Source of the DNA: Oopsacas minuta
Lineage: Eukaryota; Animalia; Porifera
Length of the DNA: 64,000 bases
Reading direction: 5' to 3'
Assembly (NCBI GenBank): GCA_024704765.1
Contig: JAKMXF010000022.1
Location: 310,001-374,000, forward strand
Below are positions 58,808 through 64,000 of the stretch, one piece after another. Position 1 is the first letter of the stretch; every line of letters begins with the position of its first letter. Under the pieces are notes generated by a model. It had not been told where the DNA came from and searched no databases. It saw only the letters and a program-made list of their open reading frames with translations. The position numbers and the translations under genes are program-made.

Positions 58808-59653
58808 TCAATTAATATTTTCTGTACTAACTGAAGAAGAATGTGCCTTCTTGCTGGGCGGGTGTAGAATATACCTTTGTGATACGGCTACAGGCTGACT
58901 GTATCCTCCTTCAAAATGGTGATCCTCGAATTTAACATTATATTCGTCATACACTGTTTTAGGCTGTGAATGCACTACTCCGGGATAGAAGCAAGTTGTA
59001 TGTGGGTATAGAGCTAGCACTGAATCTCCTAGTGTGTATAGAAGAGCTGGATTCTTGCTAGGTTCTACTTTCTGTAGAGGTAGAAACGCTATATGTCTGC
59101 GTTGTAAGTAATACATTGCATCTTCCCGTTCTATGTCCTGTACAGCATACCTAGCTGTGTAACCATTGAAACTCTGTATAACTCCTAGAATCCACTGAGA
59201 GCTTCCCTCACACGAGGAAATACGGGCAGCAACATGATCTCCTGTCCTTCCCTTATGCTTTTCATCAGGCTGTACATTTCCACAAAGGGCGGGAGCTTTG
59301 TCACTCTCTCCTCTCCACACGGGCAGTCTGTCTGCATGATCTCTCAGCAGAGCGAAGAGGGTACTCCTCCTGAAGGAGATCCCTACCTCTGCTAGATCCG
59401 AGCTACTCTCCTTGATTAGGAAATCAGCTTTATTTATAGCAGCCTCTGCATGTGTCAGCTGCTGGATTAAACTGTCTGCACATTCCTTTCTTCTCTCCCG
59501 TTGTTGTGAGCTGCTTATGTCCCTATCCCCTTTTTCCTTACCTGCTCTAGCATAATCTAACTGTTTATGACAAGCTATGTTCTCCTCCACCAGTTTCTGT
59601 ATTAGTTCATTCAGATCTCTAAGTGCCTCTGTTACGCTACTTGATCTCTCCAT
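58808..59653 (-). CDS. SGF29: SAGA-associated factor 29 (coiled coil plus tandem Tudor)
   Basis: LPVWRG...PALCG; GDHVAA...QWILG; VLALYPHTTCFYPGVV...YNVKFED...GYS...VSQRYIL. Confidence 0.93.
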   Translation of the reverse strand: MERSSSVTEALRDLNELIQKLVEENIACHKQLDYARAGKEKGDRDISSSQQRERRKECADSLIQQLTHAEAAINKADFLIKESSSDLAEVGISFRRSTLFALLRDHADRLPVWRGESDKAPALCGNVQPDEKHKGRTGDHVAARISSCEGSSQWILGVIQSFNGYTARYAVQDIEREDAMYYLQRRHIAFLPLQKVEPSKNPALLYTLGDSVLALYPHTTCFYPGVVHSQPKTVYDEYNVKFEDHHFEGGYSQPVAVSQRYILHPPSKKAHSSSVSTENIN

Positions 59654-59955
59654 TCTTGTAGATAAATTATCTGAAGCTAATTTGAGTTTCCCTTATTATT
59701 TGTAAGAGATATATCATGTGCTAAATTTTAATTTACATCATCTGGCACATACAACACAGTTAGAAATCAATGTACTTTGAAAATTCTTAAATGATTATCT
59801 GCTTTACTATTGAATTATGTTAGTTTAGTTATAACTATTCTGGTTATAGAATAGACAGACAATTCGTTAGTATAGTATTTGAATAAATGAACTGAATCAA
59901 CATTTACAGTAGTATTGTATTGCTAAGAAGATTTCTAGTCACCAAGACTTCTAGA

Positions 59956-61509
59956 ATGATCAGAATTCTAATTGTTTTATTCTACTATTATTCTCAATAC
60001 TAAGTTGTCTTGGTTTCATATCTGAATATGGAGAACTAACTAATCCAGAAGGATTAGCTATAATGACAATTCACAAGCCTGAGATTTGTATTGCTAAAGC
60101 CCAGAAGAATGATGTTGTATCTTATCATTATATTGGACGGCTGCTATCTGACAATTCTGTGTTTGGTAGAAGGTTAGTATAATTATTACGTAATAATTTT
60201 TCAAATAATGATAATTTAATGTATCAATTATTTGTTTACAGTTTCGACTATAACACACCATACATTACTCCATTGGGAGACGCTAAGATAATAGCAGGTA
60301 TGGATCAGGGATTGATTGGGACGTGTTTAGGAGAAAGAAGGAGGATCACAATCCCACCTCACCTGGGGTATGGTAAGAAAGGAGCGGGAGCTAATATACC
60401 ACCTGATTCTACCCTTGTATTCTATATAAAACTATTAGAAATTGAGCGTGTAAGTTCAATCAATTTTCATAAGGAAATATACCATGAATTTTATTCTACT
60501 TCTCTATAGGACGGTATCTCTATTGGATCTGATCAGACTCTTGAAGCAGTATACAATACTGCTAACAGGAATTACGAGGCTAAGAATTGGCGTAATTCCA
60601 TTAATGCGTTTGAATTCGCATTGAATCTTTTCCGCGAATTTGAAAATAAAACTGTGGAATGTGTTAGACAATGCAATAAGTGAGTAATCTGCGAGATTTG
60701 AATATTCACAATTAACCTATTTATTCGTATATTATATTAGTAACTCATTATTTGATGATATTGTGGAAATTGATGAAATACTACTCTCTTCTTCCATTAA
60801 TGGTATTGGCTCTGTTAAAGATTTACTACCAATGCTACAAACATCGAAATGCTTACAGTCTTGTAGAAAATACTCCTTCAAAAGCAAAGAATTAGATGTT
60901 TCCTATGATATTATCTATACTTTCTTCTCGAAACATTTCTATCTCGTCTTACAATGGGCTTATAACCAAGTAATTAGAATTGAGTAGCATAATTCCGTAA
61001 ATAGTCTAGATACAGTGGTGTTCGCATAAGAGCATATTTTTCAGTAACTTATAGTCCATTTTGGTATTGGAAATAATTCCTTTATTAGCAAGGAAAATTC
61101 GTGCAAAATACGACTGGCTGATAGGCGAACTCCACTGTGTTTGTTTTCAATATATTTCCATTTAAATGTATTCAATAGCAGAAACTTGTATTCTATAATT
61201 CATCAGCTCTTACTACACACAGATAGGGGATGACTACAATGCTGCTGTATACAATCAAATGTACTACAATTTATACCCAGATGTAGAAATGGCTAAAACT
61301 AACAGACAGTATTATAATCGTAAATTGGGAGAAGATTACAAATCTGTTAGAAACAGAGCAGTTACATACAACACTCATTCTTATTACATTTCTGGAGTTG
61401 AAGGTTTGTTATTGTTTGTGTTCTCAAGAATATGTTTTGATTCGATTTATATAATTTAGTTAGCAAATTAAACAACAAACTGTTTTATGAAATCTGTGAA
61501 AACAGATAA
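59956..61509 (+). CDS. Secreted FKBP-type PPIase fused to a CRTAP/leprecan-like helical domain. Exons 59956-60172 (apparent 1-nt frameshift near 59981), 60242-60449, 60510-60679, 60741-60969, 61223-61403, 61460-61509; 3' end uncertain
   Basis: IHKPEICIAKAQKNDVVSYHYIGRL...GMDQGLIGTCLGERRRITIPPHLGYG...IPPDSTLVFYIKLLEIER| then VYNTANRNYEAKNWRNSINAFEFALNLFREFENKTVECVRQC...SKCLQSCRK...FYLVLQWAYNQ|...YPDVEMAKTNRQYY. Confidence 0.75.
61011..61139. mobile_element. TA-type MITE, about 125 bp, in an intron of the FKBP-leprecan gene
   Basis: TA|CAGTGGTGTTCGCAT ... AGGCGAACTCCACTG|TG; 14 of 17 inverted positions match. Confidence 0.75.
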
Positions 61510-61926
61510 ATGTAAGTTAGAAGGAATCGAATTATTCAAGGAAATTACTACAACCTCTAATTAATTGAATTGAATAGTAATAGCTATAAATAAATACAGA
61601 AACCATTACCTATTAACGTATCTGTAGAGGTGTGATTAATACTAATATTTCAGGCCCTTTTTAGATCCAGCGATTATTTGAGTTCCCTTAACATTGACAG
61701 AGCCAAATTGCATGATCACGTACCATGAATCTATTCTCCTTTCTTGTACTACTGGGTTGTGAATGAACATTTATGTCCCAGATTTCCTCGGTATCCCAGT
61801 TGGTACTTACGTAGCTATGCAATGCCCAGTGAAGTGCAAATATTCGAAGGGGGTACTATCCGAGATTTCATTCACTTGATTAATACAATTTGTAACAGTA
61901 TTAAACACAATGTACATAAATATTAT

Positions 61927-64000
61927 TCAGAATACACTCAATAGTTCCTTTCTAACTGAAGCTACGTTATCATCTGTCTTTATGATAGATAAATAAGTGA
62001 AAAACAAAGCATAAGCAGATAGAATATGCCACACGTCATGTGTGTCGTAGAATCCCCATAACACACAGTCTCTGTTCATTTCTTTAGATACTACAGTACC
62101 CAAGGACCAATTAGTTACTGGATGTGAGTAAACACTGAATGCTATAATCCAAATAGCACAGCTTAATATCCCAATTGAGATTGTTACTACTAACACACCA
62201 GTGTTATATCTGTATTCCCTTTTGATTACTTTCATTAGCCAGTAATAGCAGAGATAGAAAAAGAAGTTTCCAACAAATATTCCTAGAAGTATAGTCACCA
62301 TTTCCAGCTTGGGTATGAATATGAGACAGCAGGCGCCACACAAGTTAATACCCAAAACAAAGCATATGTGTATAACGCGATGTTTGTTGTGATTAGGCCA
62401 GAATACACGATACACTGATTGTCTCCGTGTAAACACGTCATGTATCGTGAATATTATAAGAGAAGCATTTCCGAGATAATATAGGTTTATTAGTAGCGTT
62501 AGTGTGATTAGAAATACGAATAAAATGTATATAGTCCGTATACAGTAGAGGAATGATGAAGATTCGAATGCATCTAATAACGATAGACAAGTAAATATTC
62601 CTAGTAGGAGAATGAATGTGTGAGAGGATAGGTTTGAGCCTGCATGTCTGTAAGTGTAGAGTTGTAGGATAATTAGCAATAAACTCACAAACATGAATAG
62701 GGTGTCATATTTATAGTTACCCGCGTTAGGACAGGCGTGATACAATGCACTCATAAATCCCTCTGTTATCATACTACATCCCATGGCTAGTTCTAGTCCT
62801 ATGTATTTGTCAACCCCTCTCTTTGCTGGAAGGTTATCTCTGCTATAGCGAGCAGCAACGATTAACATAAACAATACCCCGAGTATGACAAATCCACTAT
62901 TGCTCCATACATTGTTAAACGCGTACAAATTGCCCAGACGTGAAGCACATCTTGCATTGTAGAAACAGAAATCTAGATCTCCTTGTTGTAGAGCTATTTG
63001 TTGTTTCAGGAACGTGCTCTGTAATGCTGGTATACAGAAGAACAAGCAAATAGAGCATAAACCCCAAACAAAACGCATATACTTCTTATCCAAATAATTA
63101 TTAGAAGGATCAGTCAAACTTTGTTTAGTTTCTAAATTCCAACTTAATTCTGAAAATAATTCCTGATAAGTTCTCTTCTTTTCTTCGAATTCTTCTCTGT
63201 CTTTCCGAGATAATAGATCAGAACATTCTTCACAGCTTTCTGTGGCAAAGAAGATTAATACAAATCTTGGATTCTTCGAATGCATAAATTTCTCAAATAT
63301 GAAAATTAAGAAGAACACTAGATACATCGGAGCGAATAAACAAGGAAATAAACAAATTTTCACCCAAAAATTATTCTCAAATTTGTTTTCATTTTCTTTC
63401 AAAACAGTAACATTCAATTTAATATGTGTATTTTGATTCTCCGAGCTTGACTGAATATTACAGATTTTTGGATTCACGAGCTTCAAAACTAGGAAGAACT
63501 CATTACTCCCGTTCCATTCATTCAATGGTATATATGCAAACTTCCTCATAAGAAAATGCTCAGTATTTTCAGCTAGCTGAGAACCAGGTACAGGTGGATA
63601 ACTATCATGATGTATCTCTCCTCTAATACAATAAATATCTTCTAAGTATATCTTAATATTGAGATGAGAATGGTTATTAGTTTGATAATCATCTTTGCTA
63701 CGAAGAATATTGTTGATAGAAGAATAGTATAATAGTAGAGGAGAGGAATAAGCTAACGTCAAAGGAGGGGTCGAAACACCATCTTGTAAGAATAAGTAAT
63801 CTACAGAAAAGTAATTGAAAGAATTAAATATTATACACGTAAATATTTCTAATTATATACTTACCTATACTTGAAAATATAATTTGATACATAATATAAT
63901 TAACAGAGTGTGTAATTAAGACAACATCCACCTCTTCAGTATGATTATTCTCTAATTTACTACAACAAATAGTATATTTTACAGAATAGTGTAATCTCTC
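61927..64000 (-). CDS. SID-1/ChUP family transmembrane protein (SIDT1/2-like). Exons 63865 to beyond 64000 and 61927-63782; the gene runs off the window
   Basis: DLDFCFYNARCA...FNNVWSNSGF; EGFMSALYHACPN...YDTLFM; CVLWGFYDTHDVWHILSA...DD...VF. An upstream exon is open to the window edge and joins in phase 1 (ag|gtaagt...cttacaag|). Confidence 0.93.

Follow-up and report, generated by a model that had tools for sequence, protein, structure and literature searches.

A sponge gene that splices an FKBP domain in frame onto a CRTAP-like leprecan scaffold

We describe a gene of the glass sponge Oopsacas minuta that begins near the end of a 64,000-nucleotide stretch of genomic DNA (contig JAKMXF010000022.1 of assembly GCA_024704765.1, positions 310,001 to 374,000 of the forward strand; hereafter the window). 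Its nine exons encode an FKBP domain and, joined to it by splicing in the same reading frame, a CRTAP-like leprecan scaffold without a hydroxylase domain. The coding sequence amounts to 1,587 nt, or 529 codons, and is divisible by three only when one C that is missing from the window is counted. In order, the predicted protein would comprise a signal peptide, one FKBP2-like domain, a tether of ~10 residues, a complete CRTAP-like TPR scaffold and an RDEF tail. The explanation that fits best overall is a fusion of FKBP and CRTAP in the endoplasmic reticulum (ER) that works with the prolyl 3-hydroxylase (P3H) complex, and we give this whole reading, including the order of parts and the mechanism discussed below, a probability of about 0.6. 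An initial interpretation of the letters alone (the sequence-only reading) had proposed a single-chain module of FKBP and leprecan parts. Its structural side stands, in that the two parts are in frame on one spliced transcript and recur in two sponge classes; the function of the module is one that we infer.

Splicing and layout of the gene

The region around the gene is AT-rich eukaryotic DNA with short introns; the O. minuta genome has a G+C content of 36% (PMC10280926). Five public runs contain this stretch, none of them recorded as RNA, and their contigs were compared over positions 59500-61800. Contigs from runs X1 and X3 pass unbroken through the introns, in the manner of DNA. Run X4 has zero intron depth and four GT..AG joints that are found in X4 only, at 60172/60242, 60449/60510, 60679/60741 and 60969/61223. 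From this absence of intron depth and these four joints we take X4 to behave as RNA, which puts the exons of the FKBP and leprecan parts on one spliced molecule. The joint between the two parts, 60449/60510, is crossed by a 283-nt X4 contig with 134 letters on one side and 149 on the other, and the read depth at this joint resembles that of the flanking exons. The 60-nt phase-0 intron and the junction across it had both been predicted from the letters, and both are borne out.

All exons lie on the plus strand. Exon 1 (59956..60172) carries the start codon, a hydrophobic N-terminus that looks by eye like a signal peptide, and the beginning of the FKBP domain, matching positions 4-25 of the Pfam model FKBP_C. 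Intron 1 (60173..60241; 69 nt, GT..AG, phase 2) falls within this domain, and the X4 contig omits its 69 letters. The remainder of the domain is in exon 2 (60242..60449), which covers FKBP_C positions 31-94 of 94 and ends ...KLLEIER before the donor gtaagt, as had been noted. Intron 2 (60450..60509; 60 nt, GT..AG, phase 0) forms the joint between the FKBP and CRTAP-like parts, and has a TAG at its end if read through. The TPR region starts in exon 3 (60510..60679), which contains the motif CVRQC and matches TPR_leprecan at 2-46 of 310 (E 2.3e-5) and positions 143-198 of a profile of demosponge fusion sequences. Exon 4 (60741..60969) contains CLQSC and a YLVLQWAY helix, matches TPR_leprecan at 72-116 of 310 and is 59-61% identical in two related genomes. 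Exon 5 (61223..61403) lies in the CRTAP-like region and is collinear with residues 296-326 of a protein from the demosponge Amphimedon and with profile positions 284-333. Exon peptides were searched one at a time against Pfam, the PDB, proteins and profiles.

In the window as given, the ATG at 59956 is shifted by one base against the frame of exon 1 and reaches a TAA after 15 codons; the exon 1 reading frame itself opens at 59958. An extra C behind 59977 is present at full depth in all of X1, X3, X4 and X5, the last of which comes from a second organism. It follows that the window has a one-base gap, that the gene is not broken and that the ATG is in frame. The start that had been proposed at 59956 is thus wrong for the window as it stands and right once the C is counted. 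In both related genomes (loci L006 and L007, see below) the ATG and exon 1 share one frame, and the hydrophobic N-terminus is kept. An annotation built on an assembly lacking the C at 59977/59978 would be expected to mis-call the N-terminus.

Past exon 5 (after 61403) the X4 contig carries on with CTTATAACAG, which was not found in the window and has a single occurrence in the adjoining 10 kb of the contig (L002; window coordinate = L002 + 61000), directly after an AG and 3.13 kb downstream. Unspliced X4 depth beyond 61403 is 57, compared with ~1,200 on exon 5, so that retention of intron 5 is minor at most. This intron (61404..64533, the end being given as window-equivalent) spans 3,130 nt, of which the first 2.6 kb (61404..64000) are in the window. 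Exon 6 (L002 3534-3661; CREFC) begins at window-equivalent 64534, directly after the AG, and is followed by exon 7 (L002 5072-5228; CKAEC), which matches TPR_leprecan at 237-275 of 310, by exon 8 (L002 5293-5429), which is conserved in L006 and L007 and collinear with the Amphimedon protein, and by exon 9 (L002 5500-5661 including the stop). Exon 9 is the true last exon, with RDEF at its C-terminus. All four of these exons are kept in L006 and L007, and they are validated by their collinearity with residues 330-519 of the Amphimedon protein and positions 337-532 of the demosponge fusion profile.

The end of the gene had been placed at 61509, an error by which four further exons past the window were missed. 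The last exon with a stop proposed at 61460..61509 (plus strand) was rejected since the exon spliced to exon 5 in the RNA is a different one, and this stretch is not conserved at the matching place in L006 or L007.

The two halves of the protein and their relatives in other sponges

The FKBP domain reported in the sequence-only reading is confirmed by the Pfam match to FKBP_C (PF00254) over exons 1 and 2, with exon 2 scoring 73.7 bits against a cut-off of 21.1 (E 1.6e-20). The best full-length solved match of exon 2 is human FKBP2, to which it aligns as far as residue 138 of a 142-residue chain; the sponge domain thus ends at the point from which FKBP2 continues into its short C-terminal tail. 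When compared by eye with the genome's own FKBP12-like sequence (FKBP12 numbering), the pocket residues Y26, F36, D37, I56, Y82, I91 and F99 are kept, F46 is replaced by Tyr, and W59, at the floor of the pocket, by Met. Of the whole gene, exon 2 is conserved best, with 88% identity between hexactinellid genomes.

For the second half, the leprecan/CRTAP signature that had been noticed was recovered as matches of exons 3 and 4 to TPR_leprecan, joined by exon 7, and exons 3-9 are collinear with the orthologue profile. Full-length orthologues match the same model at 1.5e-43 and 2.8e-52, over positions 5-308 and 3-309 of 310. Four CXXXC motifs are present, CVRQC in exon 3, CLQSC in exon 4, CREFC in exon 6 and CKAEC in exon 7, and all four pairs are invariant in nine demosponge fusion sequences. 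No Pfam match to a 2OG-Fe(II) oxygenase domain was found in the nine exons or in the full-length orthologues, and exon 3 has neither a Met nor a signal peptide, as had been said of the leprecan part. The profile of the fusion proteins matches human CRTAP (8k0e_B) at 1.7e-41 over residues 41-385, and P3H1 at 4.4e-27. In the AlphaFold model of the Amphimedon orthologue, CRTAP chains are the best fold matches (target TM 0.75). This closeness to CRTAP over P3H was measured on the orthologue profile and model, and the model is confident in its TPR part and poor in its FKBP part (pLDDT 40-60; pTM 0.59). A PDB search with the exon 4 peptide alone gave no match. The leprecan part is CRTAP-like in its four CXXXC motifs, in its lack of a dioxygenase domain and in having human CRTAP as its best match among solved structures.

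The C-terminal tail reads RDEF in three hexactinellid genomes and H-x-EL in demosponges. HDEF and KDEF are working, if weaker, signals for the KDEL receptor (PMC7617889). With the hydrophobic leader recognised by eye and the RDEF or HxEL tails, the fusion protein probably resides in the ER lumen. The sequence-only reading had seen neither a 2OG domain nor a KDEL in the gene; the first of these statements holds, and a KDEL-like tail, the RDEF, lies on the last exon beyond the window.

With exon 4 as query, an exhaustive search of proteins yielded no named protein and just two short ORF fragments, which are ~60% identical and lie on long ENA contigs. The loci around these two matches, L006 and L007, belong to two related genomes and contain all nine exons in the same order at 59-88% identity, with a 56-nt GT..AG phase-0 intron at the joint (..ER|) and, again, RDEF at the C-terminus. 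When the TPR part of the sponge P3H was used in a word search, a 531-residue protein with FKBP_C and TPR_leprecan came up; Amphimedon queenslandica XP_019853696.1 ('cartilage-associated protein-like') and UniProt A0A1X7ULA9 ('peptidylprolyl isomerase') are members of its cluster. The same architecture is found in Halichondria panicea ('SC65-like'), in Geodia barretti ('Cartilage-associated protein') and in several Logan and JGI contigs; all these contigs are of transcript size (1.7-3 kb) and hold the whole fusion ORF. Individually, the O. minuta exon peptides fall in order along XP_019853696.1, and all nine match the profile of nine demosponge fusion sequences in order, over positions 25-532 of 535.

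Co-occurrence of FKBP_C and leprecan domains, for which a search had been recommended, is found in Amphimedon, Halichondria and Geodia; within the limits of word-based searches, the FKBP-CRTAP architecture appears restricted to siliceous sponges. The claim that no such protein had been described fares less well, as FKBP_C plus TPR_leprecan entries exist in NCBI and UniProt; as sequence, the architecture is already public from no fewer than three named demosponges, where automatic naming has labelled it inconsistently. No paper on the FKBP-CRTAP fusion architecture was found in the open-access literature.

In Amphimedon and Halichondria the inter-domain intron lies at the same codon boundary and in the same phase (..ER|DG..), and so does the last intron. 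The position and phase of the joint intron are therefore common to five genomes, that of O. minuta included, from two sponge classes. Because this phase-0 intron is common to both classes, the fusion is old, and a single fusion before the split of Hexactinellida and Demospongiae is most likely, being the simplest reading of the sequences. It may have originated when an FKBP2-type gene lost its short retention tail and was spliced onto a CRTAP gene without that gene's own signal-peptide exon.

Partner genes, proposed mechanism and rival explanations

Genome searches covered the assembly of 61,460,524 bases in 365 contigs and found exactly two TPR_leprecan loci, the fusion gene and one P3H. The P3H gene (contig C166, 593871-595790; L003) is intron-less, has 639 codons with TPR_leprecan and 2OG-Fe(II) oxygenase domains, and matches the NCBI entry 'Prolyl 3-hydroxylase 1-like [Oopsacas minuta]' with 100% identity. 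Compared with this P3H, the exons of the fusion gene show clear similarity for exon 3 only, the other matches being weak and partly out of order because of internal repeats. A cyclophilin B-like gene (C166 597870-598487; L008), encoding 205 residues with a signal-peptide-like N-terminus, lies head-to-tail on the same strand as P3H and 2.1 kb downstream of it. These two neighbours correspond to two subunits of one known complex. The fusion gene sits on a different contig from this pair. The genome also has a free FKBP2-like gene (contig C266, 155247-155672; L012 348-773) with a signal peptide, an SKEL tail and the pocket Trp kept; at 46% identity over exon 2, it is a likely paralogue of the fused FKBP domain. 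Since a cyclophilin B gene is present, the FKBP adds to cyclophilin B in the gene set and does not replace it, and the earlier suggestion that the sponge uses an FKBP rather than a cyclophilin is not supported at the level of gene content.

In the human complex, the N-terminal domain of P3H1 and CRTAP form a pseudo-symmetric base, TPR1-2 of CRTAP is the primary collagen-binding site beside the reaction centre, and acidic residues at the C-terminus of CRTAP and the N-terminus of P3H1 form the docking site for cyclophilin B (PMC11381544). By analogy with this P3H1/CRTAP/PPIB assembly, the CRTAP-like part of the sponge protein would pair with the N-terminal TPR domain of P3H and bind unfolded procollagen. 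The FKBP, ~10 residues from the start of TPR1, would hang at the N-terminal TPR1-2 end beside the collagen site, where it could isomerise X-Pro bonds of the same scaffold-held chain, alongside cyclophilin B and not instead of it.

A number of observations weigh against this scheme or against parts of the evidence for it. R114, R115 and K123, with which human CRTAP forms salt bridges at its interface with P3H1, are not retained in the demosponge consensus. Where human CRTAP binds PPIB through an acidic patch near its C-terminus (around E386), the sponge proteins have a conserved basic motif, K[RK]xGxRG[DE] (L002 5590-5610 in exon 9; alignment columns ~555-570), which ends in RGD in O. minuta and most demosponges and in RGE in two relatives. 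The human geometry cannot simply be assumed when neither the contact residues nor the acidic patch are kept, and cyclophilin B may dock differently on the sponge complex or not at all. W59 is Met in the O. minuta fusion and in nine of nine demosponge fusion sequences, whereas the pocket Trp is kept in human FKBP2, human FKBP14 and the free FKBP2-like protein of O. minuta; because of this replacement the fused FKBP can only be called a putative isomerase. As to the gene itself, X4 has no RNA record, its RNA nature being judged solely from its behaviour, the exon links E6 to E9 are drawn from homology and not from reads, and the signal peptide was judged by eye, from the hydrophobic N-terminus that follows the ATG once the extra C is counted. 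A cross-species complex prediction, pairing the O. minuta P3H N-terminal domain with the Amphimedon CRTAP part and run without controls, scored 0.19 against a mark of 0.34, which speaks neither for nor against binding. A metagenome scan for a demosponge P3H gave only one distant leprecan-like contig (L011), which was not used.

Some of these observations can be read in favour of other explanations. The sponge protein could be a stand-alone collagen chaperone, in which the TPR part is a collagen handle for the FKBP outside the P3H complex, and P3H acts alone or with cyclophilin B only. This would account for the loss of the human P3H1-contact residues and for the lack of support from the complex prediction (itself no evidence against binding), and would agree with the position of P3H and cyclophilin B next to each other while the fusion gene is on another contig. 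The TPR region of the sponge fusions also scores on TPR_P4H, the model of the P4H peptide-substrate-binding domain, in keeping with this reading. However, the fusion is the only non-catalytic leprecan beside a single P3H, the gene set expected of a P3H-CRTAP pair; the whole CRTAP fold, with the helices from which the base of the human complex is built, appears from the model to be kept; and the loss of interface residues from the sequence says little, as such residues often change in concert in two partners. We consider the stand-alone chaperone unlikely, and still the strongest competitor to a fusion that works with P3H. A different view takes the FKBP domain to be an enzyme no longer and to serve as a proline-peptide binding or docking module, for its place in the complex or for holding collagen, with isomerisation left to cyclophilin B. 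The Met in place of W59 in O. minuta and all nine demosponge sequences, the Trp retained by FKBP2, FKBP14 and the sponge's own free FKBP2-like protein, and the existence of the cyclophilin B gene are what one would expect of such a module. Against it, the other pocket residues are kept (by eye), exon 2 is the most conserved exon (88% between hexactinellid genomes) and Met, being hydrophobic as well, may leave the pocket functional. Loss of enzyme function is the less probable of these two alternatives, and we regard it as improbable.

That the fusion might be an artefact, with neighbouring FKBP and CRTAP genes joined by read-through, mis-assembly or an error of prediction, is a suspicion raised by the frameshift near the start codon of the window and by the unrecorded type of run X4. 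The frameshift is, however, absent from all reads, and the depth at the joint is similar to that of the flanking exons. The sole stop after the FKBP exon lies within the spliced-out intron, and the CRTAP part has neither a Met nor a signal peptide of its own. The same joint, with the same intron position and phase, occurs in five genomes of two classes, and Logan and JGI contigs of 1.7-3 kb hold the whole ORF. For practical purposes an artefact is refuted.

Collagen folding is limited by prolyl isomerisation, and FKBP14 and FKBP10 are ER isomerases that act on procollagen. The vertebrate complex of cyclophilin B, P3H1 and CRTAP and the ER FKBPs (FKBP65 and FKBP22) are regarded as separate players; defects in the complex or in these FKBPs lead to brittle-bone and connective-tissue disease. 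Within the human complex, P3H1 and CRTAP stabilise one another. A fusion kept since before the split of demosponges and glass sponges suggests that an FKBP placed directly on the CRTAP scaffold is useful, and a prediction that follows from it is that FKBP-CRTAP or FKBP-SC65 contacts occur in vertebrates. Taken to its full extent as a Rosetta stone, the fusion would mean that an FKBP is an integral and ancient partner of the P3H-CRTAP machine, that the 3-hydroxylation complex of siliceous sponges has two isomerases, and that vertebrate CRTAP or SC65 directly contacts a free ER FKBP (FKBP2, FKBP14 or FKBP65). This extension is speculative and, in our estimation, doubtful. The sponge protein also offers a naturally tethered model for the coupling of isomerisation and 3-hydroxylation.

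Neighbouring features and comparison with known systems

Several other features surround or interrupt the fusion gene. Intron 5 contains, in antisense, a gene of the SID-1 family (dsRNA channel) that is separate from the fusion gene. Its main exon (61927..63762, minus strand) has a 611-aa ORF that matches SID-1_RNA_chan at E 1.5e-94, and the gene extends to window-equivalent 64285 (L002 927-3285). The nesting is kept in both related genomes, with ~60% protein identity, and no nested SID-1 gene is present among the called genes at the Amphimedon and Halichondria fusion loci. On the same strand as the fusion gene, intron 6 holds a 215-codon ORF (L002 4290-4937, window-equivalent 65290-65937, plus strand) whose N-terminus is hydrophobic and which matches no Pfam model; it is present in two copies in each related genome (53-55% identity), one intronic and one past the last exon. 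With its one-base assembly gap and two introns that contain nested genes, a layout that automatic annotation can truncate, the gene model given here is a corrected one.

Upstream, a match to an SGF29 Tudor-domain gene (window 59000-59655, minus strand) is found in the same place in both related genomes, and only ~300 nt separate the divergent starts of this SGF29-like neighbour and the fusion gene. Within intron 4, positions 61027-61140 are a short dispersed repeat, over which the depth rises 20- to 40-fold in the DNA-like runs; many unrelated contigs match ~55 letters at 61082-61138. In some contigs 61028-61093 is swapped for 27 other letters, which suggests an insertion/deletion allele.

Among known proteins, vertebrate CRTAP and its paralogue SC65/P3H4 (8k0e) are the closest counterparts of the leprecan half, sharing with it the full TPR_leprecan fold, four CXXXC motifs, an apparent secretory signal and the lack of a 2OG domain. 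As for vertebrate CRTAP, a single P3H is the candidate partner in the O. minuta genome. The sponge protein differs from vertebrate CRTAP in its fused N-terminal FKBP and its own KDEL-like tail (RDEF or HxEL), in a C-terminal patch that is basic instead of acidic, and in the loss of the human P3H1-contact residues. Its N-terminal half resembles FKBP2 (FKBP13), a small protein of the ER lumen, in having an apparent signal peptide and a single FKBP domain, but the retention tail has been replaced by ~390 residues of CRTAP-like scaffold and the pocket Trp by Met. FKBP14 (FKBP22) and FKBP10 (FKBP65) are likewise FKBP isomerases of the ER lumen, and FKBP14 is a strong sequence match of exon 2. Both, however, pair their isomerase with EF-hand or further FKBP domains and have no leprecan scaffold, and FKBP14 keeps the pocket Trp.

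With its FKBP at the N-terminus and a helical client-binding domain of TPR type behind it, the general plan is reminiscent of FKBP51, FKBP52 and FKBP38, which were weak fold matches. Those proteins are cytosolic, with an Hsp90 MEEVD-type TPR domain that is unrelated to leprecan, and at TM 0.15-0.3 the likeness is one of analogy only. The O. minuta protein has its counterparts of the same architecture in the Amphimedon, Halichondria and Geodia entries, with which it shares the order of domains, the ..ER|DG.. joint, the four CXXXC motifs, the replacement of the pocket Trp by Met and a retrieval-like tail, whereas its CRTAP part is only ~25-35% identical to theirs and its tail reads RDEF where theirs reads HxEL.

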